A stretch of DNA of 64,000 nt, from NCBI GenBank assembly GCA_965112735.1, contig OZ218953.1:4588001-4652000 (forward strand), given 5' to 3'. The notes under the pieces are model-generated. The model was not told the DNA's origin and did no database searches. It was given only the letters and a program-made list of their open reading frames with translations. Within the stretch, counting starts at the first letter, position 1, and each line of letters starts with the position of its first letter. Shown here piece by piece: positions 35,397 through 56,571 of this stretch. Made by a program: the position numbers and the translations under genes. This DNA comes from Phaeosaccion multiseriatum (taxonomy: Eukaryota; Protista; Ochrophyta, other classes).

Positions 35397-36530
35397 ATGT
35401 CTCTCTCCTGCCATCACCACGGCAAAGGTAGACTATTCCCCCGCGGATTTCGGTCCTGAGCGAAAGAAGAAAGCTTCCTCTCATCGCCCTGTTCCCTCCC
35501 TTTCTCTGCAGGCCGTGTGCGTGTGATGAAGGTACGCAGGACCCCGGAGCGCCACGAGGTGATGGAGCTTACCGTGGAGGTCATCCTCGTCGGGCCAGTG
35601 GACGAAGCCTTCAATGAAGGCGACAACACAAAGAGTGAGTAAGCCAGGGCGCCTCGCTCTCTGCCTTTATTTTCTGACGCCTCTTCCCCCCCTTACACCT
35701 CTCTGTACTTCTGGCAGCTATCCCCCTTCTCTCCTTTGACATCTTTTCTTCCTTCTTCCCCTCTCTTTGCACCCACAGTCGTTGCTACGGACACACAGAA
35801 GAACACCGTCTACGTCCTGGCGCAGCGCCACGACTTTACCTCTGCAGAGGAGTTTGCCCTGCTACTGGCTGAGCACTTTGTGACGACATACCTAGCAGCT
35901 GTACACAAGTGCAAGATCACCATCGACGAGGACATTTGGGAGCGGCATGTTGCCTGTCCTCCAGGCAGCATGGACAAGACCGCCCACCACCATGGCTTCA
36001 TGAAGAACAGCCCCATGCGGGGCTGGGTGTGCGCCACCGCGGAGACGAAGAAAGACGGGGCAGTGGACAAGACCCTCTCCGCGGGTGTTAGAAGCCTGAC
36101 GCTCCTCAAGACCACGCAGTCCTCCTTCAAGGGCTTCATCCGCGACGAGTACACCCTGCTCCCGGAGGTGGATGATCGCTTGCTGTCTTCGTCCATCGAC
36201 GCAGATTGGTCATACGACTTGGCGACAGCGCCTCCCTACGGCGAGGCTCGTGTAGCCGCGGTGGATGCCCTTGTGCACGGCTTCCTCGGGCCCGCCGATA
36301 CGGGAGTACCCAGTGCCAGTGTTCAGGCCACACTGCTGGACATGGGCAAGGCTGCCCTCGCCGCTGTACCGAGCATGACGAGCATATCCATACAGGCACC
36401 CAACATTCACAACCTTCCGTGGCAAGGCGATGCACTTGGGGTCAAGAACGAGGACGCCAGCGGAAAACCCGACGTGTTCATACCCACGAGCGAGCCCCAC
36501 GGCTTAATCTCCGCGACCGTCGAGAGACGA
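35397..36530 (+). other. UOX: Uricase (urate oxidase) domain of the fusion
   Basis: HGK, VATDTQKNTVY, signature LLKTTQSSFKGFIRDEYTLLPEVDDRLLS, SASVQATL, PNIH, PHGLISATVER. Confidence 0.95.
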
Positions 36531-39500
36531 AGAGGAGGAGGAGGAGGCGATGATGTTAATACAGTCTTGAACGCTTCTCGTCATTGTTCCTCCTACTACT
36601 CGTTTGAGGAATGCGTTCCTCCTGCGATGGGTAGTCGACTCCTCTCGCAAGCCGCAAGCGGCTCTACGATGAGGGGTGGTAACTCTTCTGGGATCCTCTT
36701 CGCTCTGGGCGTGCCCACACTGCGGGCACCGGAGCACGCTGCCTTGACCTTCCTGGCGAGTCTTGTGCACGGGGAAGTGAGTGGTCGCCTCTCCAAGCTT
36801 CTGCAGAGGCGCGCTGAGGACCGGAGGTTCATAGACCGCCGCTCTCGCTCCCTCGCAACCTGTGCGAACCTTGCTCCGACCACAACGTCGCTTCTTGGCC
36901 ACCAGGACCAGCACGGGAGGGTGGTGGTGGGCCCCCTCAGGACAGACTACGCTAGCGTGGCGGAGGAGGGCGAGCAGCCCGTCGCTCCCCTTCCTGCGCA
37001 CCTCGACCTGTCCACCTCCCATGTGACTGTGTTTGGCCCGGCGGACTCGGCGGAGGCCTGCAGGGAGTATCTACACGCATTTCAGGATAGCAGAACCAGC
37101 AGCAGTGGTAGCGGCAGCGGCAGCAGCGGCAGCAGCGGCGCGAATAAGGCAGGGAAGTGGGGGGCCGACCTGGAAGATTCACAGACTCCGTTTCCAGAGC
37201 TCGTGCAGGCTGCTGCCGAAAACTTGACCGAGAGCTACCGCCTGATTCGGGATGAGAACACTGGAGCGGCAGGGGCAGGGCACGGGGCTGGACTGTCCTT
37301 CCCTGTTGTGCGGCTGCCTGGCTTGGGGTTGCCTTCTACGCATGCCTTCATCGCCGCCTCAGGTACGCCCGTGCCCCTCCACCTCTTCATCTTCGCACTA
37401 CACGTGTTTCACAACTGGCAAGACCCCGCGGCGCGATGCTTCTACCTACCCAAGTTGGAGAACGAAGAGGAGGCGGCATACTTTGCCTTCCTCATTAAGC
37501 TCGCTGAGGAAAGGCTTAAGGAGCTCCATCCGTCATATGAAATGGGCTCGGTGCGCGTCTTTTGCGTGATTGAAAGCGGTCGTGCCATCTTCCGAGTGCG
37601 TGAGATTGCAGAGGCGCTGTACCCTTACTTCTGTGGCGCCAGTCTCGGATGGTAAGTCACTGTCAGCCCACTGCCAACCCATTTTCAACTCAAACACCCA
37701 CCGTCAACCCAACCCTTTTACCAACCCAGGCACGACTACTTGGCATCCACCTCTCGCCTCTTCAAGGAGGCCGAACACTGGATCATGCCTTCCAAAACAG
37801 ACCCAGACATAGTGGTCAAGCATATCCGCGCACAGCACGTGCTGCTAGGAGACGTGGTGGGGCGGGGCATGGGTGCTGTGAGCGTTGGTGGTATGTATGG
37901 CGTCGTCCCTGTGAGCGACGACCCCACTTCCGCTTCGTATCAAGTGAGTCTGCGCGGACTGTTCAAGGACGTGATTGCTCAGCTCAGACGCGGTTTGGTG
38001 GGGTTCTGGGTGGCGTATGCGCCCTTCGCCCGCATTGGAACTGAGATGGTTCGCGTGTGGCTGCTGGCAGAAGGAGGAGGTGGAGGTGGAGGCGGGGGAG
38101 GAGGAGGAGGAGGAGGAGGAGGAGGAGGCATCATGGAGGTGGTAAAGAGGCATCTCACCGTACCAGAGTATGTGGAGCAAGTAGCAGCCTTCCTTGCACA
38201 AGGAGACGAACAGAGGGAGGCAGCAGCAGCAGCAGCAGCAGCAGACTTGGTGCTTGACGAGAGCCCGAGGCGGCCGCCCAGTGGAGAGGCGCTCGAGTCG
38301 CTGCTTCGAGTCAACATCTCGCACTGCCTGGTCTACCTCAACGAATGGCTACAGGGCAGCGGGAACATCTCGCTGGAGTCCGAGATTGAAGGTGAGAGGA
38401 GGGAGAGGAAGGGTTTTGCTTTTGTTTGGGGAGGGGGGGGGGCGAATGAGTTGTCGAGTTGCGTTGTGGGGCCAAGTACTTTTGGCTTCGTAGTAACGGC
38501 ACCGCTCATGCCCTCCGCCAATGGACCACCGAAGAAGGAATCGCAGCTTAATGCCCTTCATCCTGACCCCGTCAGTATCTTGTTTGCTTGCATACGTTGC
38601 TTACTTGCTTGCTTGGCTGGCTTTGCTTGCTCTGCTTGCTACTTGCTTTGCTTTGCTTTGTGTGCTTGCTTTGCTTGCGTTGCTTGCCCTGCTTATTGCT
38701 GACTTGCTTTGCCCTGCTTTGTCCTGCTTTGCCCTGCTTAACATGGTCTGTTTCCTTGCCTTTGCTTGCTTGTCTCTTGCCACCACTCCAACTCAGGCAT
38801 TCCGGTGCGGGTGGTGGACGATCTCGCGACTGTGGAGCGGTCCCGCTGGAGTCTGTGGAGGGAGCTCAAGGCGGGCAGGCTGGGTATGAGCCGCTTCTTG
38901 ACAGCCACTTTCGAAGAGGCACTCAGTATCTCCAAGGCAAACACCAACAGCAACACCAACATCAACACAAACACCAACAAGCAGCAACAGCAGGGGAGCT
39001 CCTCCCCCCAGTTGGGCTCCCCAAAGTCAACGAAGTGGCAGTCCGTGGCCTTGGCCGTCTTTCTGAAGCTCATGACGGAGCTCGAGTCCCCCGCGGAGTT
39101 CGTGCCCGAGCTGCTCATGCCCTTCACGTCGGCCCTCATTCGGCAGGCTTCGGACCCGCTTGCTGCTATGCAGAGCTGCGGAGGAGACGAGATGCTGGTA
39201 CTCCGTCCACCCCTGAGGCAGTGGTGCTACTACTTTAAGATGTGTGGGTGTACGCGCTTTGCAGATGAGGTGTCACAGAGGGACGTGTTGCTAGATGTAC
39301 AACACGTCAAGCAGGTGATCGGGACCTTCAGCAAGGAGGAGGTTGTGCAGGCAGCCAACTTCAATGGAGATATCGGCGGCAGCCCCGAAGGGATGGACAG
39401 CTTGGCCAGAGAAGAGCAGGCTAAGGTGCTGAACGGAGAGGAGGGGGTGCGGCAGGCTCTGCGCGAGCTCGGGCAACAGTACCTTGCCAAATTCGACGGG

Positions 39501-42500
39501 ATGAAGTTCATGGTCTCGGCCAAAGGAAAGTCGGGGCCAGAGCTGCTTCCCCTTCTCGAGGCACGCATCAAGAACAGCGAGGAGCAGGAGGTGCAGCATG
39601 CGAGGGAGGCCCTTAGGGAGATCACAGTCAAGAGGCTGACCTCAAAGCCGCCCGACTGCGCAAGGGTCAGGATGGAGGCTCTCTTGGCCAAGCATGGAGT
39701 TGCTGGTGCGTCCATTGCCCTGGTGTCTAGCTCCTCTTCCTCCTCCTCCTCCCCCTCCTCCCTCTCCTCGGCCGCCGCCACCAAGACCCATCAGCAGCAG
39801 CACATTGTGCTGGGTCTACGGGACAAGGCCTCGGATGAGCCCGTCACAGCGGATACGTGCTTTGAAGTGGCGTCTCTGAGCAAGTCCGTGGGCACGGCGT
39901 TTAGCATGGAGTACTTTCGGTCGCGAGGCGTCTCCATCTTTGACACCCCTGCCAACGCATTGCTCAAGAAGGGGGGCTCCTCCTTCCGCCTGAGTGGGCC
40001 GTACGCAGAGGAAGTGATGCTGGTACACCTCATGTCACACTCGGCACTCAACCTGCACTACGTGAACGGAGTGCCGCTGGATAGGGAGGATGCGAATGGA
40101 GGCTTGCCCGACATTCGACTACTCATCGAGGGGTGCTCTGATCCCGTTTCGTACACGCCCATCGAAGGTGAGAGAGAGATGGAGAGAGAGAGGCACGGCA
40201 TATCATCAATGAGAGAGAGAGGCACGGCATATCATCAATGAGAGAGAGAGGCACGACGTGTCACCATTGTGGTGCTTGAGTCCCCTTCCTCACTTCCTTC
40301 TTGTGGCCTGTCTGCCTTTCACCATCTCTCCCTTCTGTCTCTATCCCCATCTCTCTCTCCCTTTCCTCTCTCTCTCTCTCTGTACCCCCCCTCTCTCTCG
40401 TCTCTCCCCCCTCACTCGCCCTCTCTCGTGTAGTGCTCGGCCCGCCCGGTGAGGTGTTCCGCTACAGCGGGGGAGGCTTCCTCGTGCTACAACACATCAT
40501 CGAGAGCCTGGAGGGCGGCAAGAGGAGCATCGCTTCCATCTCACAGCCCTTCATTGACAGCCTTTTCGGCACTGCTGTATCACCAACTGCTGCTGCTTCT
40601 GGTGCTACTACTGGTGGTCCCGATCCGGAAGTAGCCTCGTCCTCCCTCTTCACCTTCGACCCCAACCCCAACCCCAGCAGCAATTTCAAGGTGGCTTGCG
40701 GCTACGACAGCGAAGGCGCAGTCATCCCGGGCACGCGCCTCGTCTTCCCAGCGTTTGCTGCAGGAGCGTTGGCGACTCCGGCGGCCATCCTGCACTTCTT
40801 GCAGACCCTCAGCGCGGCCTACGCAGACCCGAGAGGAGGGGGAGGAGCGGGGGCACTCGCAGGCCCTATTTCGCACGACACGGCTGTACTCATGCTGCAC
40901 GGGACGGACAAGGGGTGCCTCGACTTTATGGGTTGTAAGATGGGGGTGGGTATCTTCACGGCAGAGGCGGGTGGGAATCGCTTTGCCGTCCACCAGGGGG
41001 CGAACGACGGTTTCCGCGCGCTCTTTTTGCACTGCTACAAGGGCCCTGACGTGGGGACGGGTGTTGTGGTGTGCGCCAATGGAGGCAACAAGGCCGTGGG
41101 CTTCATCAGTGAAGCGGTGCAGGAGGTGCTAAAAGTGCTCAAGGTTACGGGTGTGGACTGCCATCTCTTCGACCGCCCACCGCCTTCCCTCCAGCAGGGG
41201 GGTGCCAAGACGGTTGTCAAACAGGAGGACCTTGTCAATTTGGGCTATAAGCAAGCCCTCTTTTCGGCCTTCAGGCCCGACCTGCCCGCGAGAATCGAGG
41301 ACGTCGACCCCGAGGCCTCAACGGGTGCCAACGACCCGCGTTGGGAGTACAACGGAGCCCGAGACGCGAAGGTGGTGTGTGTCACCAACCAGGCCTTTGC
41401 ACGGGCGGACAACCTTTGCTCGGCGCGCTTACCACTCTTCGACCCGGCGTTGTTTGGCCCTCAGGGCAAGGTGATGGACAGTTGGGAGACCACCCGACAC
41501 AACCCGGCCGTGTGCGATGAGCTTGTGCTGGCCCTGAAGGAGAGCATGGCAGTGAGCTTTGTCATGCTCTCTACCAAGTACCACACCGGAAACAACTTCA
41601 AAGAGGTAGAGGTGTTGGGTTTCCAATCCGAGGCGGCGGCGGTGGCAGCGATGCTGACCAAGAGCGGCGCTTCCTCTGCTTCTGCTTTGGGTGCTGTGGA
41701 GGGGGAGGGAGTGGGAGGAGGAGCGGTGCTGCTGCTGCCCAGGCACATGCTGAAGGGCCACTCGGAGCTCCGGGTGACTGTGGACCCCTCCACCTCCACC
41801 AAACCTGTGTCGCACATTCTCGTGCGCGCCTTCCCAGACGGGGGGCTGACTCGACTCGGCCTCTTCGACCGGAGCCTGCCCCAGGCGTTTCTCGAGGGCT
41901 TTGCTCCTGCTGCAGAGGCCGTGCCCATCCCCTGCTCGGACCCCGTACCTGCGCCGCTCAAGCCCCTCGCGATGGAGTACAACACCCCCAGCGAGGAGGA
42001 CATTGCTGCCAATCTGGCGACGATTCAGGTCGGGGAGGAGTACAACGTGGCAGGAAGGGCCTTTGGAGGGCGCTTCGTGTCGGCCACCAACGAGCATTAC
42101 GGGCCTGCCAGTGCTGCCCTGAGCCCCTACCCTCCCCTCGACATGTTTGACGGTTTCGAGTCGGCCAGGAGCCACAACCGAGAGAACGAGGAGTGCATCA
42201 TCGTGGCGCTTGCCAAGCCCTGCCTTCTCCATCGCATCGAGCTCGACTTTACCTTTTTTGTCAACAACGCTCCTCTGGAAGTCGCCATCTGGGGCATTGA
42301 CGCAAGCAGTATGAGCGGCAGTACGAATGGCGGTGGCGGTGGCGGTGACTTGCCCTGGAGTGAGGCAGCGCAGATGGTGGGTCGAACGTGTGTCAAGGCC
42401 TTCGCGGCCAATGTCAAGACCTTCGAGTTCCGCGGCGAGCAGCAGCAGAAGGTGACGGTGGATCACCTCAAGATCTCGCTGTACCCTGACGGAGGAGTCA

Positions 42501-42532
42501 ACCGCATACGGGCCTTCACCATGAAGGAGTAA
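35397..42532 (+). CDS. Five-domain purine-catabolism fusion protein: uricase + malate synthase-like + OHCU decarboxylase + beta-lactamase-fold serine hydrolase + allantoicase (~2052 aa)
   Basis: Exons 35397-35427, 35512-35634, 35779-37651, 37730-38391, 38797-40167, 40434-42532; all GT-AG and phase-compatible; total 6159 nt = 2053 codons with no internal stop. Splicing restores conserved motifs across junctions (HGK|GRVRV, GDNTK|IVATDTQKN, GASLG|WHDY). Confidence 0.9.
36730..39150 (+). other. Divergent malate synthase-like TIM-barrel domain of the fusion
   Basis: TVFGP, ADLEDS, VVRLPG, FYLPKLENEEEA, CVIES, GASLGWHDYLAS, VGGMYG, GFWVA, NISHCLVYLNEWLQGSG, DDLATVERSRWSLW parallel malate synthase A motifs (DFEDS, YLPKLE, LIET, GRWDY, GGM, GTWVAHP, EDAATAEISR). 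Confidence 0.85.
39215..39640 (+). other. OHCU decarboxylase domain of the fusion (conserved His read as Asn in this copy)
   Basis: CGCTRFADEV, F(N)GDIG, AREEQAKV, L.ELG..Y..KF...FMVSA.GKS..E.L..LE.RI.N..EQE...A...L..I...RL fit the UraD family. Confidence 0.85.
39660..41140 (+). other. Beta-lactamase / serine hydrolase (class C, AmpC-like fold) domain of the fusion
   Basis: HGVAGASIALV, PVTADTCFEVASLSK (SxxK at 39873-39884), LMSHSAL, PPGEVFRYSGGGF, AAGALATP, HQGANDGF, GVVVCAN. Confidence 0.88.
41350..42529 (+). other. Allantoicase domain (two repeats) of the fusion
   Basis: TNQAFARADNL, GKVMDSWETTRHNP, TKYHTGN, FPDGGLTRL; second repeat GGRFVSATNEHYG, MFDGFESAR, FFVNNAP, LYPDGGVNRIRAF. Confidence 0.92.
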
Positions 42533-42792
42533 ATAGTGTGTATTGCATTGCTCTTTACATTAGTATATACATATTTACAAGTCCAAAGTGACACGCGACA
42601 GGGTGGTTTTCGCTTGCCATTGCCACACATATCCCTCTCTTTGCTCGCGGTTGCTTGTGCTGTGCTGACGCCCCCTTCAGTCACCCCTCAATCGAGCTGC
42701 TGGGCGTAAAGCACAAGAGGCAAAAGAAAGAGTTGTATGGTGTGAGGCTGAGCGCCTCTGCTCTGGGCCTTCACATGACTCAGGAGATGTGA

Positions 42793-43039
42793 CTAGCTGC
42801 CTCTGTAGGTGGAGTATCCAAACGGGTTCAGCAGCAAGGGCACATGGTAGTGCTCCGTGTCTGTGGTCTGGAACACGATTGACACCTCAGGATAGAAGCA
42901 CGCCGTACTGAGGCTCTCTTACATGTTGTAGCCGCCGGTATCGAAGTGCAGGCGATACACGCCTTGAGAAGGCACAGAGGAACGCACAGCAGGGAGCCGA
43001 GTAGCAGCAGCAGAACCAGAGCATCAGCACCACCACCAT

Positions 43040-43073
<34 letters not shown>

Positions 43074-43567
43074 GTACTCTCAGCGATGGTCAGTAAATGG
43101 CAAATTCCTGTCGCTCTTTTTTTCTTCTTCTATGCAGCAGGATACCACAACAAGGCCCAATCAATCCCGACCCCCCCTGCTGCTGGTCGTAAGTCTTCCT
43201 AAACTTTCCTCCCAGGTTCTCTCACCCGGCTCTAGAAGGACGTCGCTCTTCAGCAGATCCTTCACCCGCCCATCGTTGTCCGTCATCCTTTCGCTCGCCG
43301 CCCATGAGAGAGGAGGGTCGTAGAGAATAAGAAGGATTAGAAGAGCACGGGGGACCCGATCCGGAGCTCACACCCTCAAACAGCATTTGTTCTCTTTCTC
43401 CTCCTTACTCTATCAGATGTTGCTCACCCTCGGCAATGAGGGTCCATTCCTCTGTTGACTCCCCTGGCTGGTGGTCTCGCTCTGCTGCTGGGAGCGTGGG
43501 AGCGAGATCATCCTCACTCCCGCGGTAGGCTTTCCCAAGCTCATGTCCAGGATAGATACGAGAGGTA
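42793..43567 (-). pseudogene. HIU hydrolase pseudogene (copy in duplication unit 1)
   Basis: Retains ...[19 protein letters not shown]. However, the last exon reads GGC TAC AAC ATG TAA, an in-frame stop where the intact copy has GGC TAC TAC GAG. Exon 1 has indels and no matching start codon. Confidence 0.88.
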
Positions 43568-43655
43568 TTGAAATTTGAACCATGTAGTGGATTGCCCTTT
43601 TGGTGCCATCTGTGCTGCAAAAGTAACGACTTTTTACATCACCTCAACTTTTCCT

Positions 43656-44140
43656 CAGCCCCATGCACGCCTCATTTTTGCTCTGGGCCGCTAGGCCGCT
43701 CGGCCTTCGGCCGAAATAGGCCTAGGCCGGCGGCCTCCGGCCGCTCTAGGCCGCTCACTCTTCAGTCCTAGGCGGCCTCTAGGCAGCCTCCCAGTGACCG
43801 TGGGCGCGTGCGTGGTGCCGCCCAGCCAGTGGCTGGGTAGCAGCACACCTGTAAGCCTGCACTTTGCACTTTTTTTGCACTCCTCGTAGGGCCAGCGAGG
43901 CGGAAAGAGACAACTACGCCTCACTTCAAATCCCATGCAATACATTTGCTTAAACTGACTACTCTTTGCACTCTGGGCACTTCCACCGTCCGCCTAGTTG
44001 GCGTCTGCCCTAGGCCGCGGGCCTCCGGCCCGCCTAGGCCGCCTAGGCGGCAGCATATAAATAGGCCGAGGGCCTACGGCCCTCGCTAGGCCGGGCAATT
44101 TTCCCAAATAGGCCTAGGCCGCTAGGCGTGCATGGGGCTG
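43656..44140. mobile_element. Non-autonomous TIR element (485 bp) with perfect 17-bp TIRs and CCTAGGCCG subterminal repeats
   Basis: CAGCCCCATGCACGCCT ... AGGCGTGCATGGGGCTG; many CTAGGC/GCCTAG motifs near both ends; absent from the paralogous spacer in unit 2; no TSD seen. Confidence 0.72.
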
Positions 44141-44850
44141 CGTCAGTCTCCTCCGAGCGAAGCAAAGGGACGCCGTGTATGCTTTCGATTCCTCTGCCTT
44201 ATCTCCTGCGCGCAGATTGACCGCTGAAGACCCACAGCCAGCCGGTGTTTTTGACCCCATAGCACGTGCATAGACTGGCAAGTTCAGATGTTCGGCCTGC
44301 CTACTAAGGAATGTGGGTGGCGAGTGAACATGCTGCTCAGGTTTTTTCCGGCCCTGCGGGGGCCTAGGCGAGTGCTTTCAAATAAACACCTGAGCTGACG
44401 GCCCTAATGCACCATATTACAGTTCCATGACCAAGGGTACCAAGTGGTACCGCGCCGGGTCATTATCATTGATGACCCTCTACCTCGTCACCCCACCAGT
44501 AATTTGCCGTAAGATGGCAATTAACGGCTTCGCCCCCCGGCACGTTCCGTTCCCGCTCAACTCGCATCCTTTCTTCCTTAAACACAGGGCTCATACAGCC
44601 AGCAGATACAAAGGTAGACGGCACACATGATGGGTCTTTACCTTGAGTTCCTTATTTTAATGCGCTCTGTCCACAGGAGCCCTGCTGCTGCTACACATTT
44701 CCGCACAAAACCCAAAGGTCGTCAGCACAACTGCTCACTGTCCTTACCCCCCCCACTCTCCAACTCCGCTCTTCCTTCCTCACAGCGTCCCTACTATTCA
44801 GGGCCAAGCCTTCGTTTGACCAGAAGCTGTTACACTGCTGAGCGGGGGGG

Positions 44851-47800
44851 ATGCCGCCCAATGCGGACGACCGGCAGGATAACGGAGTGGACGAGTGCAG
44901 GCAGCCGGCGAGGCGAGCTTTCAGAGGGTCAATCATACATTCGTTGGGCCTCGATGATCTTGAGATCGTCCCAGATGGGCTTATTATTGTCGATGCGGAT
45001 GGAGTTATTCTGCAGCTGCTGGACCTCAGCAGCGAGGAGAGCACTTTGGCCACTTCTCGCCTCTTCAAGGAGGCCGAACACTGGATCATGCCTTCCAAAA
45101 CAGACCCAGACATAGTGGTCAAGCATATCCGCGCACAACACGTGCTGCTAGGAGACGTGGTGGGGCGGGGCATGGGTGGTGTGAGCGTTGCTGGCATGTA
45201 TGGCGTCGTCCCTGTGAGCGACGACCCCACTTCCGCTTCGTATCAAGTGAGTCTGCGCGGACTGTTCAAGGACGTGATTGCTCAGCTCAGACGCGGTTTG
45301 GTGAGGTTCTGGGTGGCGTATGCGCCCTTCGCCCGCATTGGAACTGAGGTGGTTCGCGTGTGGCTGCTGGCAGAAGGAGGTGGAGGCGGAGGAGGAGGAG
45401 GAGGAGGAGGAGGAGGAGGCATCATGGAGGTGGTAAAGAGGCATCTCACCGTACCAGAGTATGTGGAGCAAGTAGCAGCCTTCCTTGCACAAGGAGACGA
45501 ACAGAGGGAGGCAGCAGCAGCAGCAGCAGCAGCAGACTTGGTGCTTGACGAGAGCCCGAGGCGGCCGCCCAGTGGAGAGGCGCTCGAGTCGCTGCTTCGA
45601 GTCAACATCTCGCACTGCCTGGTCTACCTCAACGAATGGCTACAGGGCAGCGGGAACATCTCGCTGGAGTCCGAGATTGAAGGTGAGAGGAGGGAGAGGA
45701 AGGGTTTTGCTTTTGTTTGGGGAGGGGGGGGGGCGAATGAGTTGTCGAGTTGCGTTGTGGGGCCAAGTACTTTTGGCTTCGTAGTAACGGCACCGCTCAT
45801 GCCCTCCGCCAATGGACCACCGAAGAAGGAATCGCAGCTTAATGCCCTTCATCCTGACCCCGTCAGTATCTTGTTTGCTTGCATACGTTGCTTACTTGCT
45901 TGCTTGGCTGGCTTTGCTTGCTCTGCTTGCTACTTGCTTTGCTTTGCTTTGTGTGCTTGCTTTGCTTGCGTTGCTTGCCCTGCTTATTGCTGACTTGCTT
46001 TGCCCTGCTTTGTCCTGCTTTGCCCTGCTTAACATGGTCTGTTTCCTTGCCTTTGCTTGCTTGTCTCTTGCCACCACTCCAACTCAGGCATTCCGGTGCG
46101 GGTGGTGGACGATCTCGCGACTGTGGAGCGGTCCCGCTGGAGTCTGTGGAGGGAGCTCAAGGCGGGCAGGCTGGGTATGAGCCGCTTCTTGACGGCCACT
46201 TTCGAAGCGGCACATCGCATCTCCAAGGCAAACACCAACACCGTCACCAACAAGCAGAAGCAGCAGCAGCAGCAGCAACAGCAGGGGAGCTCCTCCCCCC
46301 AGTTGGGCTCCCCAAAGTCAACGAAGTGGCAGTCCGTGGCCTTGGCCGTCTTTCTGAAGCTCATGACGGAGCTCGAGTCCCCCGCGGAGTTCGTGCCCGA
46401 GCTGCTCATGCCCTTCACGTCGGCCCTCATTCGGCAGGCTTCGGACCCGCTTGCTGCTATGCAGAGCTGCGGAGGAGACGAGATGCTGGTACTCCGTCCA
46501 CCCCTGAGGCAGTGGTGCTACTACTTTGAGATGTGTGGGTGTACGCGCTTTGCAGATGAGGTGTCACAGAGGGACGTGTTGCTAGATGTACAACACGTCA
46601 AGCAGGTGATAGGGACCTTCAGCAAGGAGGAGGTTATGCAGGCAGCCAGCTTCCATGGAGATATCGGCGGCAGCCCCGTAGGGATGGACAGCATGGCCAG
46701 AGAAGAGCAGGCTAAGGTGCTGAACGGAGAGGAGGGGGTGCGGCAGGCTCTGCGCGAGCTCGGGCAACGGTACCTTGCCAAATTCGACGGGCTGAAGTTC
46801 ATGGTCTCGGCCAAAGGAAAGTCGGGGCCAGAGCTGCTTGCCCTTCTCGAGGCACGCATCAAGAACAGCGAGGAGCAGGAGGTGCAGCATGCGAGGGAGG
46901 CCCTTAGGGAGATCACAGTCAAGAGGCTGACCTCAAAGCCGCCCGACTGCGCAAGGGTCAGGATGGAGGCTCTCTTGGCCAAGCATGGAGTTGCTGGTGC
47001 GTCCATTGCCCTGGTGTCTAGCTCCTCTTCCTCCTCCTCCTCCCCCTCCTCCCTCTCCTCGGCCGCCGCCACCAAGACCCATCAGCAGCAGCACATTGTG
47101 CTGGGTCTACGGGACAAGGCCTCGGATGAGCCCGTCACAGCGGATACGTGCTTTGAAGTGGCGTCTCTGAGCAAGTCCGTGGGCACGGCGTTTAGCATGG
47201 AGTACTTTCGGTCGCGAGGCGTCTCCATCTTTGACACCCCTGCCAACGCATTGCTCAAGAAGGGGGGCTCCTCCTTCCGCCTGAGTGGGCCGTACGCAGA
47301 GGAAGTGATGCTGGTACACCTCATGTCACACTCGGCACTCAACCTGCACTACGTGAACGGAGTGCCGCTGGATAGGGAGGATGCGAATGGAGGCTTGCCC
47401 GACATTCGACTACTCATCGAGGGGTGCTCTGATCCCGTTTCGTACACGCCCATCGAAGGTGAGAGAGAGATGGAGAGAGAGAGGCACGGCTTATCATCAA
47501 TGAGAGAGAGCGAGGCACGGCATATCATCAATGAGAGAGAGAGGCACGGCATATCATCAATGAGAGAGAGAGGCACGGCATATCATCAATGAGAGAGAGA
47601 GGCACGACGTGTCACCATTGTGGTGCTTGAGTCCCCTTCCTCACTTCCTTCTTGTGGCCTGTCTGCCTTTCACCATCTCTCCCTTCTGTCTCTATCCCCA
47701 TCTCTCTCTCCCTTTCCTCTCTCTCTCTCTGTACCCCCCCTCTCTCTCGTCTCTCCCCCCTCACTCGCCCTCTCTCGTGTAGTGCTCGGCCCGCCCGGTG

Positions 47801-49881
47801 AGGTGTTCCGCTACAGCGGGGGAGGCTTCCTCGTGCTACAACACATCATCGAGAGCCTGGAGGGCGGCAAGAGGAGCATCGCTTCCATCTCACAGCCCTT
47901 CATTGACAGCCTTTTCGGCACTGCTGTATCACCAACTGCTGCTGCTTCTGGTGCTACTACTGGTGGTCCCGATCCGGAAGTAGCCTCGTCCTCCCTCTTC
48001 ACCTTCGACCCCAACCCCAACCACAGCAGCAATTTCATGGTGGCTTGCGGCTACGACAGCGAAGGCGCAGTCATCCCGGGCACGCGCCTCGTCTTCCCAG
48101 CGTTTGCTGCAGGAGCGTTGGCGACTCCGGCGGCCATCCTGCACTTCTTGCAGACCCTCAGCGCGGCCTACGCAGACCCGAGAGGAGGGGGAGGAGCGGG
48201 GGCACTCGCAGGCCCTATTTCGCACGACACGGCTGTACTCATGCTGCACGGGACGGACAAGGGGTGCCTCGACTTTATGGGTTGTAAGATGGGGGTGGGT
48301 ATCTTCACGGCAGAGGCGGGTGGGAATCGCTTTGCCGTCCACCAGGGGGCGAACGACGGTTTCCGCGCGCTCTTTTTGCACTGCTACAAGGGCCCTGACG
48401 TGGGGACGGGTGTTGTGGTGTGCGCCAATGGAGGCAACAAGGCCGTGGGCTTCATCAGTGAAGCGGTGCAGGAGGTGCTAAAAGTGCTCAAGGTTACGGG
48501 TGTGGACTGCCATCTCTTCGACCGCCCACCGCCTTCCCTCCAGCAGGGGGGTGCCAAGACGGTTGTCAAACAGGAGGACCTTGTCAATTTGGGCTATAAG
48601 CAAGCCCTCTTTTCGGCCTTCAGGCCCGACCTGCCCGCGAGAATCGAGGACGTCGACCCCGAGGCCTCAACGGGTGCCAACGACCCGCGTTGGGAGTACA
48701 ACGGAGCCCGAGACGCAAAGGTGGTGTGTGTCACCAACCAGGCCTTTGCACGGGCGGACAACCTTTGCTCGGCGCGCTTACCACTCTTCGACCCGGCGCT
48801 GTTTGGCCCTCAGGGCAAGGTGATGGACAGTTGGGAGACCACCCGACACAACCCGGCCGTGTGCGATGAGCTTGTGCTGGCCCTGAAGGAGAGCATGGCA
48901 GTGAGCTTTGTCATGCTCTCTACCAAGTACCACACCGGAAACAACTTCAAAGAGGTAGAGGTGTTGGGTTTCCAATCCGAGGCGGCGGCGGTGGCAGCGA
49001 TGCTGACCAAGAGCGGCGCTTCCTCTGCTTCTGCTTTGGGTGCTGTGGAGGGGGAGGGAGTGGGAGGAGGAGCGGTGCTGCTGCTGCCCAGGCACATGCT
49101 GAAGGGCCACTCGGAGCTCCGGGTGACTGTGGACCCCTCCACCTCCACCAAACCTGTGTCGCACATTCTCGTGCGCGCCTTCCCAGACGGGGGGCTGACT
49201 CGACTCGGCCTCTTCGACCGGAGCCTGCCCCAGGCGTTTCTCGAGGGCTTTGCTCCTGCTGCAGAGGCCGTGCCCATCCCCTGCTCGGACCCCGTACCTG
49301 CGCCGCTCAAGCCCCTCGCGATGGAGTACAACACCCCCAGCGAGGAGGACATTGCTGCCAATCTGGCGACGATTCAGGTCGGGGAGGAGTACAACGTGGC
49401 AGGAAGGGCCTTTGGAGGGCGCTTCGTGTCGGCCACCAACGAGCATTACGGGCCTGCCAGTGCTGCCCTGAGCCCCTACCCTCCCCTCGACATGTTTGAC
49501 GGTTTCGAGTCGGCCAGGAGCCACAACCGAGAGAACGAGGAGTGCATCATCGTGGCGCTTGCCAAGCCCTGCCTTCTCCATCGCATCGAGCTCGACTTTA
49601 CCTTTTTTGTCAACAACGCTCCTCTGGAAGTCGCCATCTGGGGCCTTGACGCAAGCAGTATGAGCGGCAGTACGAATGGCGGTGGCGGTGGCGGTGACTT
49701 GCCCTGGAGTGAGGCAGCGCAGATGGTGGGTCGAACGTGTGTCAAGGCCTTCGCGGCCAATGTCAAGACCTTCGAGTTCCGCGGCGAGCAGCAGCAGAAG
49801 GTGATGGTGGATCACCTCAAGATCTCGCTGTACCCTGACGGAGGAGTCAACCGCATACGGGCCTTCACCATGAAGGAGTAA
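44851..49881 (+). CDS. Chimeric gene: guanine deaminase N-terminal 67 aa fused in frame to the malate synthase C-half + OHCU decarboxylase + beta-lactamase-like domain + allantoicase (~1433 aa)
   Basis: Exons 44851-45682, 46088-47458, 47783-49881 (4302 nt, open). MPPNAD...SSEESTLA matches the protein starting at 51387; TSRLFKEAEHW onward matches the fusion gene. Confidence 0.82.
47474..47607. repeat. ~29-31 bp intronic minisatellite (GAGAGAGAGGCACGGCATATCATCAAT): about 4 units here, about 2 in the paralogous intron (40183-40256)
   Basis: Direct reading of both introns. Confidence 0.8.
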
Positions 49882-50141
49882 ATAGTGTGTATTGCATTGC
49901 TCTTTACATTAGTATATACATATTTACAAGTCCAAAGTGACACGCGACAGGGTGGTTTTCGCTTGCCATTGCCACACATATCCCTCTCTTTGCTCGCGGT
50001 TGCTTGTGCTGTGCTGACGCCCCCTTCAGTCACCCCTCAATCGAGCTGCTGGGCGTAAAGCACAAGAGGCAAAAGAAAGAGTTGTATGGTGTGAGGCTGA
50101 GCGCCTCTGCTCTGGGCCTTCACATGACTCAGGAGATGTGA

Positions 50142-50382
50142 CTAGCTGCCTCTGTAGGTGGAGTATCCAAACGGGTTCAGCAGCAAGGGCACATGGTAGT
50201 GCTCCGTGTCTGTGGTCTGGAACACGATTGACACCTCAGGATAGAAGCACGCCGTACTGAGGCTCTCGTAGTAGCCGCCGGTATCGAAGTGCAGGCGATA
50301 CACGCCTTGAGAAGGTACAGAGGAACGCACAGCAGGGAGCCGAGTAGCAGCAGCAGAACCAGAGCATCAGCACCACCACCAT

Positions 50383-50419
<37 letters not shown>

Positions 50420-50879
50420 GTACTCTTACTCTCAGCGATGGTCAGTAAATGGCAAATTCCTGTCGCTCTTTTTTTCTTCTTCTATGCAGCAGGATACCAC
50501 AACAAGGCCCAATCAATCCCGACCCCCCCTGCTGCTGGTCGTAAGTCTTCCTAAACTTTTCTCCCAGGTTCTCTCACCCGGCTCTAGAAGGACGTCGCTC
50601 TTCAGCAGATCCTTCACCCGCCCATCATTGTCCGTCACCCCTTCGCCGCCCATGAGAGGAGGAGGGTAGAGAACAACACAAGTGAGCGACCTGACTGGAA
50701 GAGCACGGGGGACCCGAAGCTCATTCATTTGTTCCTTACTCTATCAGATGTTGCTCACCCTCGGCAATGAGGTTCCACTCCCCTGTTGACTCCCCTGGCC
50801 TCTGCAGGGAGATCCTCACTCCCGTGGCAGGCTTTCCCAGGCTCGTGTCCAGGATATGCGAGGTGATCTGGCTCACCAT
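50142..50879 (-). CDS. uraH: 5-hydroxyisourate (HIU) hydrolase, transthyretin-like, 115 aa (exons 50759-50879, 50578-50640, 50142-50305)
   Basis: [18 protein letters not shown]|VTDNDGR, G|[36 protein letters not shown] (YRGS signature). Confidence 0.93.
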
Positions 50880-51386
50880 ACTCCACGCAGCAGCAGAGCA
50901 AGAGCCAAAGGGAAATAGAATGGGGGAAGAGTGAGCGTAAAAGTGTAAAAGTAATGGATGGCAACTAACGGCTTCGTGCGTGCCAAACTCCGAAAGTTCG
51001 ATCAAAGTTCCCGCCCTCAATTATTTTTCCCTTTCTTCCTTAAAGCCAGGGCTTATACAGCCGACAGATACAAAGGTAGATGCACAAATAATGAGTCTCT
51101 ACCCTTCTTTCCTTAGTTTAATGCGCTGTGTCCACAGGAGCCCTGTTGCTGCTAACCATTCCGTACATAACCTTAAGTTCGTCAGAACAACTCCTCACAA
51201 TCCTTTCCTTCCTCTCCCCCTCTCCACCTCCTCTCTTCCTTCCTCAACCTTAAAACTGATGAACTTCTCACAGTCCTTCCCCACCTCCCCCACTCTCCAA
51301 TTCCGCTCTTCCTTCCTCACAGCATCCCTACTATTCAGCGCCAAGTCTTCGACTGACCAAAGCTGTTACGCTGCTGAGCGGGGGGC
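50880..51386. promoter_or_regulatory. Putative bidirectional promoter shared by HIU hydrolase and guanine deaminase
   Basis: 507-bp head-to-head spacer between two genes of the same pathway; a diverged copy lies upstream of the chimera (~44497-44850). Confidence 0.5.
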
Positions 51387-54300
51387 ATGCCGCCCAATGC
51401 GGACGCCCACCAGGATAACGGAGTGGACGAGTGCAGGCATCCGGCGAGGCGAGCTTTCAGAGGGTCAATCATACACTCGTTGGACCTCGATGATCTTGAG
51501 ATCATCGCGGATGGGCTTATTATTATCGACGCGGATGGAGTCATTCTGCAGCTGCTGGACCTCAGCAGCGAGGAGAGCACTTTGGCCCTGGAGAGAGACT
51601 TCTCGGAGATTGAGATCGCAGACCACAGCGGGCAGCTCATCATCCCGGGCATGATTGATGCTCACTGCCACGCACCTCAGCACCTCTTTGCCGGGACGGG
51701 CATGGACCTGCCGCTGCTGGATTGGTTGGAGCGATACACCTTCCCCACGGAGGCCAAATTCTCAGATGAGAGCATGGCTGCTGAAGTGAGCATAGACCAG
51801 AGCTTCGAGATAGAGCAGTAGGAGAGGCCTACCTCGCTTTGCAGAGTGGAGTACGCGCGCGCCCTTTCTCTCTCCCTCCCTCTCTCTCTCTCTCTGTGTG
51901 TGTGTGTATGTGTTTCTCTCTCCTTCACTCACTGTCGGTCATTCTCTGCTGGAACACACGTCGCGCCCCCACCTACCCCTCTCCGCGTCCCTCCAGGTTT
52001 ACGAGAAGGTCGTTGCTCGCCACCTCAAGTCCGGCACAACCTTTGCCTCTTACTTCGCGACCATCCACACAAACGCAAGTATAGCTCTGGCTCAGGCATG
52101 CAACAAGGCCGGCCAGCGCGCGTACATTGGCAAGGTTACAATGGACCGCAACAGCCCGGACTTCTACATTGAGGAGGCCGATGAGGCTGTCAAGGAAGCA
52201 GAGAGCTTTGCGGTTAAGGTGCTCAACATGAACGCGGTGAGTGGGCGGGTCTGAGGCGCAGAGGTTGCTCTGCCTGTTCCGTGTCCTCCTCGCCCCTTTC
52301 TTCTCTGACTCTCCCCCTCTCTTTGTCTCCCTGTGTCTGTCTCTCTGTATCTCTCTCTGTCTCTGACTGTGTGTGTGCCTCTCGCTCTCTCTCGCGCGCT
52401 CTCCCTCTCTACTGTCTCTCTCACGACGCAGCGCGGCGCCAAGCACTCTGCCGACTGCGAGGCCTTCTGGAGGGGGGAGAGCAGTGAACCCCCCCCTCCG
52501 CTGCTCAACCAGAGACACACACCCACTGTGCTACCGTGTATCACTCCGCGCTTTGTGCCCTCTTGCACGGGGGCTACGATGGAAGGCCTTGGGAACATCG
52601 CGAAGAAGTTCACTTTGCCTGTGCAGGTACGCACCAAACACGCATGCATTACGTATCATCACACACACGCACATACACGCACACACACGCGCAAGTACAC
52701 ACACACAAGCACACATACACATATGACATACACATATCACATACACACAGGCAAGAACACACACACACACATAAGCACACACACAAACGAAACGGGGAAA
52801 TCAGCGCGGAGAATTAAGAGGAGGAAGCAAAGGCGCAAGCCAAGCGTATCCACCAAACTCAAGCCCTTCCTCCACGACCTGTCCCTCCGCCCACCCCTTA
52901 CTCCTCATCTTCAGTCGCACTTGAGTGAGAACCCAGACGAGATTGCGTGGGTGAGTGAGCTCCACCCCGACTGCGAGACATACGCGCATGTGTACGAGAA
53001 GTACAATTTACTCGGCCCCTCTTCCTTCATGGCCCACTGCTGCCACTCGCCCGAGACGGAGCTGACACTGCTCGCGAAGTCTCAGACCGGAGTAGTGCAC
53101 TGCCCCTCGTCGAACCTGATGTTGTGTTCGGGTATCGCGGATATCAAGGTAAAGGCTTCACATTCAGTCCATCACTCCCTTCCTCATTTCATTACTCCCT
53201 CACTTCCTCACTCACTCACTCACTCACTCACTCACTCACTCACTCACATACACACTCATTCACTCTTTCCCTCACGTACTCACCCACTCCCTCCCTCTCT
53301 CTCTCCCTCACTCCTTCTCTTGCTTCCCCACAAATTCCCTCCCTGCCTCCTTTCCTTAGAAAATGTTGAGTATGGGCATCAATGTTGGGATCGGTACGGA
53401 TGTGGCTGGAGGCTTCAGCCCGAGTATGTTCGATGCAATGCGCCTCACCCTCCAGTCTTCCCGGTGAGTGGGATGAGAGTGAGTGAGTGAGTGAGTGAGT
53501 GAGTGAGTGAGTGAGTGAGTGAGCGAGCGAGCTTGCCTCGCTCCTCCGCCTGATCGACCAAATCTCTTCAGAACCCCGCCCTTCTTACTTTTATCCATAT
53601 CTCACTGTGGCTTTCCTTATCGTAACTTGCTCGCTGCCTCCACCTCAATCCTCAACACCTTCATATACAACCTGAAGAGCTCACGCGCTGGCCAAGTATC
53701 AGAGTCCGCTAGCGACACCCCAGACACGTAAGTTCAACACTTAGTTCAACACTTTCCTCCTTCTGGTCCAAACTACATGTGCCCGTTCGCCCTCCTCCGT
53801 TTCTGTCTTATCTTGTGCCCCCCTCCCCTCGCCGACCCCCCGATCTCCTCATTTTACTTTTTCGCTCTTCTGCGTTGTTCACAAAAGGTGTGTCGATTGC
53901 GGACACTCTGAGCGTCCGAGAAGTATTCTACTTGGCCACCGTGGGGAACGCACAGGTGTTGGGCAACGGTAAGATGCTCGGCAACTTCCTCCCCGGCAAG
54001 AAGCTCGATGCGCTGGTGGTGAATGTGGACACAGGGGCAAGCTTCGACGTGTTTGGGCATGAAGGGCTCGAGGAGCTCTTCTCCAAGTTCATCTTTCAAG
54101 GCGACGATCGGTGCATCAGCAGCGTCATTGTCAATGGGGAATATGTGCTGGGCAGGGAGAAGGCAGTGGCGGTTACGTCCGAAGAGTCGTTTGCCTCTCA
54201 TGCCGCGATTGAGACGGTGCATGTGCTGGAGGAGATGGAGAAGACTTTCAACAAGCGAGTGCAGGATAGTTCCAACTTTATCAAGACGGCCCACCCTGCC

Positions 54301-54423
54301 AGTGAGAGCGTCACGTCCAGCACCGTGTCCAGCAGCACGACGCAAACCTCGACTCGCGCTGGCACGGGCATGCGGGGTAGCACGAGTTTCGCAAACCTGC
54401 CGGAAGATGAACAAGTGAGCTAG
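51387..54423 (+). CDS. GDA: Guanine deaminase (7 exons)
   Basis: IPGMIDAHCHAPQ, LPLLDWLERYTFPTE, SGTTFASYFATIH, GKVTMD, ITPRFVPSC, Q|SHLSEN, AHCCH, HCPSSN, GIGTDVAGG, FYLATVG.A, GNFLPGKKLDA, GDDRCI; GT-AG phases consistent. Confidence 0.95.
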
Positions 54424-55093
54424 GGAGGGGGGTTTGGGTGTAGCTGTTTGGTGGATCGGAGGGGAGCAAGATGGGGTGAAGACGAGGGCGAGCAGGAGTT
54501 TGGGAGGGTTGGGTGTTACTATTGGGGGGGGGGTTGGAGGGGGCACATGTTATGAAGACGAGAGTAGTTCGGGGCGGGGGGGGGGGGGGGGGGGTGACGT
54601 GTACAAAGCACGTGCAGGGTTGACGTAAGAGAGCGCACCGACGGGAAGAAGGAAGAGGGCTTCTTCGATTGGTCTGACATTTCACGCACCTGAAGTTTGC
54701 GGGCTGGCGGCTTTTGAGGCAAGTCGGTCGAAATGGAGGGGCGGAAAGGAAAGACACCAGCGAGGGGGGGGCGGGCAGTAGGGGAAAGCAGCGGCGCATG
54801 TAAGTAGTAAGGGGAATGTATGAAGGGAAACGTAAAATATACTAAAAAAGAGCAGCCGCGAGAAGGACACTTGGTCTGTTTCTTATTTTGAAATGATGAG
54901 GTTTTCCTACTTACAAGTGTGCCTCAGTAATCGGGCTCTTATCCCTGCAACGCCTTCGCCTATGTACATGGCGCCCTCGTTATGCGCGTTTTGTTGCGCT
55001 GTGCTTCTATCCGAAGTCAAACAAAAGTCTCCCCTTCACCCCTCTGCCAAGTGGGCCCTCCCCTTCACCCCTCTGTCAAGTGGCCCCACCCCT

Positions 55094-56571
55094 TCAGACC
55101 TCGGCCAAGTGGGACGAGTCGGGTGTGAGCCGAGCTTGTGTGCGGTACAGCTCTCTGTGGTGCTTCCCGTCATTGTTGAAGGGCATGGCCTTGTGCAGCG
55201 TCTGTGTGTTGTCCCAGAACACAACGTCTCCCCTGCGCCACTTGTGGTAGTAGGTGAAGGAGGGGCCAGTGGAGTGATCGATCACCATGGTGAGTAGCCT
55301 GCCGGCGTCCTCCTTGGACAACATCAACTCCTTCTCCTTGGCCTCGTCTTGGCCTTGGTACCGCATAACTTTCATGTGTGGGGACCCTACGTAGAGGTTC
55401 GGCTTCCCGTCTCCCGAGGGGTGCGTGTCGATGATGGGATGCCTGACTTCAGGGAAGGCGGCCAGTTCCTCTTCAACCCCGTTACGCGTGAAGTCAGCCT
55501 TGCGGTCAATGAGTGAAAAGCGCGTGTGTGTGTGCGTGCGTCAATGCGAGTGCGTGAGTTAGTCTGTGAGTGAGTGAGTGGGCGAGCGAATGAAAGGGAG
55601 AGAATAGAAAAGGAGGGAGTGGACGTGGACCTTCGAACGACTTACAATGTCTCGCACAGAAGCCACGATGACCTTATCCTGCACTAGCTGCATGAGAGAA
55701 GCTGAGAGGGTGTCACGTGCCATCCGTATGTCTGCGAAGCCCGTCTGGCCTCCGTAGCCCCCGGGAGGCGCCTGTTCCGAGTAGAGGAGAGAGACAAGGT
55801 AGCGCTTCTCCCGGGTCCAAAACTGGCCATCCTGATGCCAATAAGCGCCGAAGCTGTGCGAGGGACCTAAGGGCGTGTGTTGGTTGACAGACACCAAAAG
55901 AGTACAGGGTCAATCCGTGTCTCTCAAAGAGACCACACCCCTCGCCAGACGGATCTACATGCACTGCGCCGGTCTACTTACCCTTCCAGGTACCGTTGCC
56001 CCCCCAGAAGTTGGTAACGCGCTGAATGGCGGGCTCTCCTGGCTCGGGATCTCTTCCCTCGAAGGAGGGGGGGAGGACCACTACCTCGCCGATCCTACCC
56101 GTGAGCTCTACCTTTTGGCGGAGAACGGGTAGCGAGGTGGTTAATATCGAATATCGACTAAACTACCAAGAAGCAGACAGAGGCGTCGGACCCACCTGCT
56201 CGTGCCTCGTCAGGTTCTGCCCAGGAACCACCACCACTCCGTAGTCGTGGATCGCCTGAAGAATGGGGCGATGAGAGAGTGAAAAAAGTAAAGGAAGTCG
56301 TAAGGAAAAATCGAGAGGTGCCATCACAGAAACCGAAAGTATTGTGTACCTGCAGTAAGAAGGTTAGCTTCGCGTCATCCATTTCCTTCAGATCTCCCAT
56401 GTCCAGCAGCTCAGCACCCAGCCGTTCCGTCGCTCCGCAGAGGCCGTTGTCGCAAGCGCCCAGCACATCTTTATTGCGCCTCCCGATGTGGCCACATGTC
56501 TCTTCACCGTCCGAAGCCGCGGCGTAAAGGAAAAGGAAACCCACCACGGCCCACACCCAGAGCTTGATCAT
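55094..56571 (-). CDS. TauD/TfdA-family Fe(II)/2-oxoglutarate dioxygenase with N-terminal signal peptide (5 exons)
   Basis: LGAEL, AIHDYGVVVVPGQNLTRHEQ, WHQDG (HxD), GGQTGFAD, HPIIDTHP...LYVG, YYHKWRRGDVVFWDNTQTLHKA...RELYRT; hydrophobic N-terminus MIKLWVWAVVGFLFLYAAA. Confidence 0.9.

Follow-up and report, generated by a model that had tools for sequence, protein, structure and literature searches.

A probable mosaic gene cluster for purine catabolism in a stramenopile alga

Metabolic gene clusters are rare in protists. Among fungi, XanA is an Fe(II)- and 2-oxoglutarate (2OG)-dependent xanthine dioxygenase belonging to the TauD family. The DAL cluster of yeast (DAL1, DAL2, DAL3, DAL4, DAL7 and DCG1) brings together non-homologous genes that draw nitrogen from ureides, among them an allantoicase and a member of the malate synthase family; it begins at allantoin, includes a transporter and a classical allantoinase, and is made up entirely of separate genes (PMC13751858). 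A group of malate-synthase-like (MS-like) genes that co-evolve with allantoicase and uricase encodes ureidoglycolate lyases, marked by the substitutions R276I and W365M and by a degenerate acetyl-CoA site (Dembech et al., PMC10120013). In this work, we analysed a stretch of 64,000 nucleotides from the genome of the ochrophyte Phaeosaccion multiseriatum (GenBank assembly GCA_965112735.1, contig OZ218953.1, positions 4,588,001 to 4,652,000; hereafter the window, to whose first letter all positions refer). Between 35.4 and 56.6 kb it carries a multi-domain fusion gene running from uricase to allantoicase, a 5-hydroxyisourate (HIU) hydrolase, a guanine deaminase (GDA) and a TauD-family dioxygenase (DOX). 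We conclude, with a probability of about 0.68, that the clustering is real, and that this stramenopile alga possesses a purine-catabolism locus of mosaic composition.

The algal cluster is like the DAL cluster in uniting non-homologous genes that serve nitrogen acquisition from ureides. However, it begins at guanine rather than at allantoin, includes uricase, HIU hydrolase and decarboxylase of 2-oxo-4-hydroxy-4-carboxy-5-ureidoimidazoline (OHCU), carries five activities in one gene, lacks a transporter, and shares part of its linkage with bacteria. Its likeness to bacterial purine operons and the classical puc/hpx clusters lies in a four-domain protein accompanied by an HIU hydrolase, in whose vicinity stand a urate oxidase, an enzyme that makes urate from xanthine, and a GDA-like gene. 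In the bacterial operons, the HIU hydrolase usually precedes the fusion on its own strand, and urate comes from xanthine dehydrogenase (XDH), encoded together with molybdenum cofactor (Moco) genes; the alga, in contrast, has introns, genes on both strands, a uricase fused at the N-terminus, a TauD-family gene in the place of XDH, and a eukaryotic GDA. The cluster is a eukaryotic, partly bacterial-patterned version of the purine-catabolism cluster.

Gene models were assembled from open reading frames, GT-AG splice sites, RNA contigs and intronless homologues. Database searches with the spliced proteins were conducted one exon at a time, or by way of intronless homologues. The G+C content of the window is approximately 58% and spliceosomal introns are present. 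The initial annotation of this DNA had described an operon-like cluster of a fusion gene, an HIU hydrolase, a guanine deaminase and a 2OG dioxygenase; gene models and profile matches found each of these genes where it had been placed, and Pfam and NCBIfam matches upheld the five steps that it had listed (guanine deaminase, uricase, HIU hydrolase, OHCU decarboxylase and allantoicase). Eukaryotic metabolic gene clusters are recognised by at least three non-homologous genes of one pathway in adjacent slots, and this is what the fusion gene, the HIU hydrolase and GDA, together with DOX, present. As a rough estimate, three to four purine-catabolic genes would fall by chance into consecutive slots of a genome of ~10^4 genes with a probability of about 1e-7 or less.

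The neighbours outside the cluster, namely a coiled-coil protein, a SnoaL-like protein, Yae1 and COQ7, are not purine-related. The cluster is real and, with its spliceosomal introns, eukaryotic, as had been proposed. Its assignment to an alga was also sustained: the best named relatives of COQ7 are those of the ochrophytes Tribonema, Heterosigma and Nannochloropsis, and when GDA is considered along with COQ7, the top named matches belong to ochrophytes and oomycetes, in keeping with a stramenopile lineage. An operon, however, occupies one strand as a single transcription unit. The cluster genes follow the strand order +, -, +, -, +, -, and each has its own start and introns, so the term "operon-like" can be retained only as a metaphor.

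The five-domain fusion gene (35397..42532, + strand) has six exons (35397-35427, 35512-35634, 35779-37651, 37730-38391, 38797-40167 and 40434-42532) and encodes 2052 residues. It was delineated from Pfam and NCBIfam matches on open-reading-frame pieces, with joints taken from GT-AG sites and from alignment to L005, an intronless eukaryotic transcript that carries the fusion. The domains matched were Uricase, MS_TIM-barrel (weakly), OHCU_decarbox, Beta-lactamase and two copies of Allantoicase. The uricase domain matches TIGR03383 at 198 bits, and a single uninterrupted exon holds it together with the start of the MS-like domain. In the OHCU decarboxylase domain of the full-length fusion, the conserved His of the FHGDIG motif is replaced by Asn at residue 1086. 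Sequence identity to the window fusion is 45-53% for its closest eukaryotic relatives, 43% for a protein of Planctomycetota (Phycisphaerales) and 38-42% for those of Bdellovibrionota. L005, at 53%, groups with the window at a Shimodaira-Hasegawa-like approximate likelihood ratio test (SH-aLRT) support of 99. Because the base of the fusion tree is an open one, we make no claim on the direction of transfer of the fusion between bacteria and eukaryotes.

An exhaustive profile-free search with the 743-residue last fusion exon as query returned 95 cluster representatives below the cut-off of E 1e-30, many of them 1400-1775 residues long and composed of MS-like, OHCU decarboxylase, beta-lactamase-fold and allantoicase domains. 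When one genome per species was scanned, this four-domain fusion was found in 234 bacterial species, most of them Bdellovibrionota (Bdellovibrio, Bacteriovorax, Peredibacter, Oligoflexus), with others in Planctomycetota and Myxococcota. Neighbourhoods were counted in 80 bacterial loci (L020-L099), in 64 of which the fusion has an HIU hydrolase as its immediate neighbour, in most cases on the same strand and preceding it. Other genes present in individual loci encode XDH, accompanied by XdhC and Moco functions, a PuuD-type oxidase or a uricase that needs no cofactor, a GDA-like amidohydrolase, an adenosine deaminase, or a xanthine/uracil permease. Neither a classical allantoinase nor an AllA-type lyase was present in those bacterial loci whose gene tables were examined, and the uricase of the algal fusion found no match in the 80 loci at E 1e-5. 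Among the Bdellovibrionota loci fetched, a fusion of approximately 1500 residues preceded by an HIU hydrolase was near-universal.

The adjacency of HIU hydrolase and fusion is therefore the rule in bacteria and need not be a new assembly in the alga. Across all relatives compared, GDA and DOX are linked on contig L019, and HIU hydrolase and fusion are linked in bacteria and on contig L105, whilst no such linkage occurs on L001, L007, L017, L018 or L101-L104. Part of the cluster linkage may be inherited. The initial annotation had taken the cluster to be independently assembled, a claim that is not supported by the finding that the four-domain core with its adjacent HIU hydrolase is a conserved operon in Bdellovibrionota and Planctomycetota.

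To place the MS-like domain, we aligned it to E. coli AceB, from which the residue numbering is taken; the fusion-type domains comprised that of the window and 12 others. Arg166, Asp447, the Mg ligands Glu250 and Asp278, and Trp365 are kept in 13 of 13. All 13 likewise possess GWHDY in place of GRWDY (R276W, W277H). The two pieces of the window domain scored 24.7 and 16.3 bits, below the Pfam cut-off of 26.4, and reached 35 bits versus 594.5 for TIGR01344. The domain therefore has neither the GRWDY motif with Arg276 nor the family-level score by which malate synthase A is recognised. A comparable case is zebrafish DrMSL, a malate synthase homologue that is tied to allantoicase and uricase and has lost Arg276 (PMC10120013). 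DrMSL, however, carries R276I and W365M, whereas the fusion family carries R276W and W277H and keeps both Trp365 and the Mg ligands. Moreover, the published ureidoglycolate lyase group was reported from eukaryotes only (PMC10120013), whereas the fusion-type domain is common in bacteria.

Judged by these residues, the MS-like domain is not a canonical malate synthase, and it does not appear to be a ureidoglycolate lyase of the published type. A lyase role nevertheless seems at least as likely as malate synthesis, because the domain is fused to allantoicase, which releases ureidoglycolate, and occurs in loci that, where gene tables were examined, contain no other lyase. The initial annotation had carried the pathway through to malate, with removal of glyoxylate. 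Since Arg276 of GRWDY is absent from every member of the fusion family, and since MS-like genes linked to allantoicase have proved to encode lyases of ureidoglycolate (PMC10120013), the evidence does not establish that the pathway ends in malate.

The intact HIU hydrolase (50142..50879, - strand; exons 50879-50759, 50640-50578 and 50305-50142) encodes 115 residues. Pfam Transthyretin and TIGR02962 both match exons 1 and 3, SHILD lies near the start, and the protein ends in YRGS, all features expected of the family; the 3' end of the gene is covered by an RNA contig. GDA (ATG at 51387, stop at 54423, + strand; seven exons, 558 residues) faces it head-to-head. The spacing between the ATGs at 50879 and 51387 is exactly the 507 bp first reported (50880..51386). 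The RNA contigs were drawn from one metatranscriptome, of an organism 95-99% identical to this alga, and the compared stretch lies outside the fusion and the chimeric gene described below. Spliced contigs demonstrated four GDA splice junctions, three coding and one in the 5' untranslated region (UTR). The 5' UTR intron (51076-51322, 247 nt) places the first GDA exon within approximately 200 bp of the HIU hydrolase start codon, so that the promoter space shared by the two genes is about 200 bp.

TIGR02967 was the best or near-best model for each of the four GDA exons tested (78.6, 72.1, 92.8 and 45.5 bits), and the catalytic and metal-binding motifs are present as AHCH, SHLSE and GTDVAGG (HxH, HxxE and GTD). 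Relatives of the protein bear the name guanine deaminase in their source databases, with Ochromonas, Ectocarpus, oomycetes and chytrids among the named matches. Identity amounts to 58.6% with the GDA of contig L019 and ~47-50% with the next-closest enzymes, which are eukaryote-type; it spans 45-58% over Ochromonas, Ectocarpus, the oomycetes and L019, but is only 28-29% with the GDA-like genes of the bacterial fusion loci. By these comparisons, GDA is of the eukaryotic (stramenopile) type. Its introns (at 52640-52900 and 53150-53350) are full of CA/TC-type simple repeats that translate as long THTHTH or SLTHSL runs.

DOX (55094..56571, - strand) lies tail-to-tail with GDA and encodes a TauD/TfdA-family Fe(II)/2OG dioxygenase of 345 residues in five exons. 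Intronless metagenome homologues align across every exon joint, and the gene model is thereby validated. Pfam TauD matches exons 4 and 5, and the HxD...H triad and 2OG-binding Arg are in place (YWHQDGQFW, TLHKAMP, RELYRTQ). At the N-terminus (56571-56500, - strand) is a hydrophobic, signal-peptide-like segment, MIKLWVWAVVGFLFLYAAAS, which is a possible targeting signal; alignments with homologues start after approximately residue 40. The family is common in marine algae (the diatom Amphora, the haptophyte Emiliania, Chrysophaeum and MMETSP transcripts), where it is annotated as TauD/TfdA only; the closest relatives that bear a name are likewise TauD/TfdA proteins, from algae, cyanobacteria and cyanophages.

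The closest homologue of DOX, at 65.6% identity, was found on L019, a 10-kb contig from another organism in which GDA and DOX again form a tail-to-tail pair among otherwise different neighbours. A second association was found on the metagenomic contigs L105/L106. Within 8.6 kb (3247-11813 of L105), these carry five genes, namely a tandem deaminase of the cytidine deaminase fold, a TauD gene, an HIU hydrolase, a flavin-dependent (FAD) urate hydroxylase that scores 468 bits as HpxO-type, and the four-domain fusion. The TauD gene sits between the deaminase and the HIU hydrolase. No XDH was present on the contig. The locus has a GC content of 42%, is compact and without introns, and adjoins a gene for a cyclic nucleotide (cNMP)-gated channel; promoter and terminator scans gave results at shuffle level, and Pfam matches on the flanks were uninformative as to the domain of life. 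In a tree, the L105 TauD is sister to the algal DOX clade (99 SH-aLRT), with TfdA-like proteins and E. coli TauD outside.

Fusion loci that contain XDH contain no TauD gene, and a DOX homologue is absent from all 80 bacterial fusion loci checked. This complementary pattern of TauD and XDH points to a role for DOX in the conversion of xanthine to urate, as does the precedent set by XanA among fungi. The initial annotation had left the dioxygenase without a role, whereas the GDA-DOX pair on L019 and the sister gene on L105/L106 suggest one: DOX probably belongs to the purine pathway, and the odds that it is a xanthine hydroxylase appear about even. It would then resemble XanA as a TauD-family enzyme in purine catabolism without xanthine dehydrogenase, the likeness consisting in the HxD...H triad and the linkage to GDA. 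Searches with DOX exons against PDB, NCBIfam and the ESM Atlas yielded generic TauD/TfdA matches, none of them xanthine-named; a full-length search through a DOX homologue likewise returned no xanthine-named protein, and a literature search on xanthine dioxygenase returned nothing on algae.

Repeat search and blastn revealed a tandem duplication within the cluster. Copy 1 (37747..45051, 7305 bp) and copy 2 (45050..51587, 6538 bp) are approximately 98% identical over their coding parts, with breakpoints inside the MS-like domain, just past GWHDY, and inside GDA exon 1. As a consequence, two further genes sit between the fusion gene and the intact HIU hydrolase: a second HIU hydrolase, which is dead, and a chimera. 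About 1 kb (43554-44568) is exclusive to copy 1 and not found in copy 2. This insert adjoins the only strongly diverged stretch of the duplication (HIU hydrolase exon 1 and upstream, 76-82%), the surroundings being 98-100% identical. The HIU hydrolase pseudogene of copy 1 (42793..43620, - strand), identified by alignment of the two copies, has lost its start region and contains 29 nt of insertions in exon 1 and, in exon 3, a 6-nt insertion followed by an in-frame TAA. The variant with the 6-nt insertion is also present in DNA contigs.

The chimeric gene (44851..49881, + strand; exons 44851-45682, 46088-47458 and 47783-49881) was recognised from the alignment of the copies, its frame and its splice sites. 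Its product starts with 66 residues from GDA exon 1 and continues with the last two-thirds of the fusion, from the C-terminal half of the MS-like domain through OHCU decarboxylase and the beta-lactamase fold to allantoicase. The reading frame stays open for 1433 codons, with all splice sites preserved, and the product is 97.5% identical to its parent. The His of FHGDIG that has become Asn in the full-length fusion is kept in the chimera, as it is in 10 of 10 aligned homologues, bacterial and eukaryotic. In front of the chimera stands a duplicate of the sequence upstream of GDA, with which it shares 82-91% identity. This copy and the divergent spacer between HIU hydrolase and GDA are, on their arrangement, obvious putative routes to co-regulation.

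Comparison of the copies revealed an unusual distribution of changes. Their introns (38392-38796 / 45683-46087 and 40168-40433 / 47459-47782) show 0 differences in 669 nt apart from one 62-nt length difference, whilst their exons differ at 37 of 4101 positions. Non-synonymous codon differences outnumber synonymous ones by 35 to 11 and are concentrated in a low-complexity linker and the OHCU decarboxylase domain. A poly-glycine run in the MS-like domain (38160-38230 / 45450-45510) differs in length by four codons. The 35:11 pattern is opposite to that of purifying selection and might reflect patchy gene conversion, or relaxed or positive selection; it is compatible either with the two copies having divided their tasks or with the OHCU decarboxylase of the parent having decayed.

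We considered whether the duplication is an assembly artefact. In three DNA runs (X2-X4), which are possibly from the assembly's own sample, the k-mer depth of the repeated part is approximately twice that of the unique part, and sequence running past a loose end at 51587 enters the junction of the chimera. We rejected an artefact in view of this twofold depth, the recovery of both junction forms and the copy-1 stop variant in the DNA contigs; given that the runs may be the assembly's own sample, this support does not amount to independent proof.

Taken together, these assignments suggest the following route. Guanine would be deaminated to xanthine by GDA, as homology predicts, and xanthine would be converted to urate by the adjoining TauD-family dioxygenase. 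The uricase domain would produce 5-hydroxyisourate, which HIU hydrolase would convert to OHCU. Decarboxylation of OHCU to allantoin would fall to the OHCU decarboxylase domain, probably that of the chimera, in which the conserved His is kept. Allantoin would yield allantoate through the beta-lactamase-fold domain, and allantoate would yield ureidoglycolate and urea through allantoicase. The MS-like domain would then act either on ureidoglycolate, releasing glyoxylate, or on glyoxylate, forming malate. In its boldest form, the proposal is of a complete Moco-independent route from guanine to glyoxylate, organised as a eukaryotic metabolic gene cluster. It would comprise three enzyme types that have so far gone unrecognised: a TauD-family xanthine hydroxylase replacing XDH outside the fungi, a beta-lactamase-fold allantoinase and an MS-like lyase of the GWHDY type acting on ureidoglycolate. 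Hundreds of bacteria, predatory ones and planctomycetes, would have the allantoinase and the lyase in common with the alga. We regard this combination as possible but rather doubtful.

As to origin, we propose that HIU hydrolase and the four-domain fusion represent an old, widely conserved neighbourhood, which is an operon in bacteria too, and that it was joined by GDA and the dioxygenase, both of eukaryotic or algal origin. A recent, or gene-converted, tandem duplication of 7.3 kb would then have killed one HIU hydrolase copy and set a second collection of downstream enzyme domains behind a copied GDA promoter. Because GDA is of eukaryotic type and the relatives of COQ7 are ochrophyte, the cluster appears mosaic and a wholesale bacterial operon transfer unlikely.

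These proposals were weighed against other explanations of the locus. Independent assembly in the alga from scattered genes, for a guanine-to-malate pathway with a true malate synthase domain and the dioxygenase as a bystander, would account for the eukaryotic or algal character of GDA and DOX and for the absence of linkage in other fusion-bearing eukaryotes. Five residues of the E. coli enzyme malate synthase A (Arg166, Glu250, Asp278, Asp447, Trp365) are conserved, which would suit such a domain, and the DAL cluster, with its malate synthase DAL7, offers a precedent (PMC13751858). Against this stand the bacterial adjacency of HIU hydrolase and fusion, the replacement of Arg276 in all fusion-type domains, the scores of the window's pieces below the Pfam cut-off and the lyase activity of MS-like genes that co-evolve with allantoicase (PMC10120013). 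A bystander dioxygenase, moreover, would not be expected to be linked to GDA in a second organism and to have a sister gene in a second purine cluster. We therefore consider this explanation unlikely. Still less probable is acquisition of the whole cluster as a bacterial purine operon that gained its introns later, with nothing assembled in the alga; we judge this very improbable indeed. Bacterial loci do unite HIU hydrolase, fusion, uricase, a GDA-like gene and XDH, and the window fusion has identities of 38-42% to the proteins of Bdellovibrionota and 43% to one of Phycisphaerales, versus 45-53% to its closest eukaryotic relatives. GDA, however, groups by similarity with stramenopile, oomycete and chytrid enzymes and not with those of the bacterial loci; the DOX family, common in diatoms, haptophytes and other algae, is missing from the 80 loci, in which the fusion's uricase is also unmatched at E 1e-5; and the fusion tree unites the window with a eukaryotic transcript (99 SH-aLRT), although its deep order is not settled.

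It is also conceivable that the co-location has no functional meaning, having arisen by chance or neutral rearrangement inflated by segmental duplication, with neither the chimera nor DOX functional in purine breakdown. The apparent gene count has indeed been doubled by duplication, one HIU hydrolase copy is dead, and the 11 synonymous versus 35 non-synonymous codon differences give no sign of purifying selection since the duplication. RNA contigs cover GDA and HIU hydrolase but not DOX, the fusion and chimera being outside the compared stretch. Yet three to four enzyme families of one pathway occupy consecutive slots between unrelated flanks, the same associations recur on L019, on L105/L106 and in hundreds of bacteria, and the chimera has kept its frame and splice sites intact over 1433 codons. 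We consider an absence of functional meaning highly unlikely. Several observations nonetheless weigh against a mosaic purine-catabolism cluster. On the eukaryotic fusion contigs L001 and L007, which are long and hold the fusion amid clearly eukaryotic neighbours, HIU hydrolase, GDA and DOX are all missing up to a distance of 10 kb from it. In Emiliania huxleyi and Chrysophaeum, the DOX orthologue has no purine genes as neighbours, and two other GDA contigs are without DOX. RNA support consists of a few contigs for GDA and HIU hydrolase only, DOX being uncovered in the compared stretch. The likeness of DOX to XanA is one of family and gene context, and the named relatives of DOX carry no annotation beyond TauD/TfdA. 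Finally, the L105 TauD lies on a long branch, and its placement is to be read with caution for that reason.

In the literature searched, we found no paper on an algal purine-catabolism cluster, on the multi-domain fusion or on bacterial operons that contain it. Duplication within the locus neatly illustrates how a gene can be born within a cluster of pathway genes: one HIU hydrolase has died, and a chimera with an exchanged promoter retains a catalytic His that its parent has lost. The cluster also offers candidates for three steps that have no recognised gene in these loci, namely the formation of urate from xanthine, of allantoate from allantoin and of glyoxylate from ureidoglycolate, and the same candidate enzymes apply to several hundred bacterial genomes. 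The fusion may allow predatory bacteria to strip nitrogen from the purines of their prey. Crystalline guanine is a nitrogen store of many microalgae, and withdrawal of nitrogen from Chlamydomonas strongly induces guanine deaminase along with the genes that act after it (PMC12541418). A near-complete route in one compact locus would provide a handle on the mobilisation of reserves of this kind.

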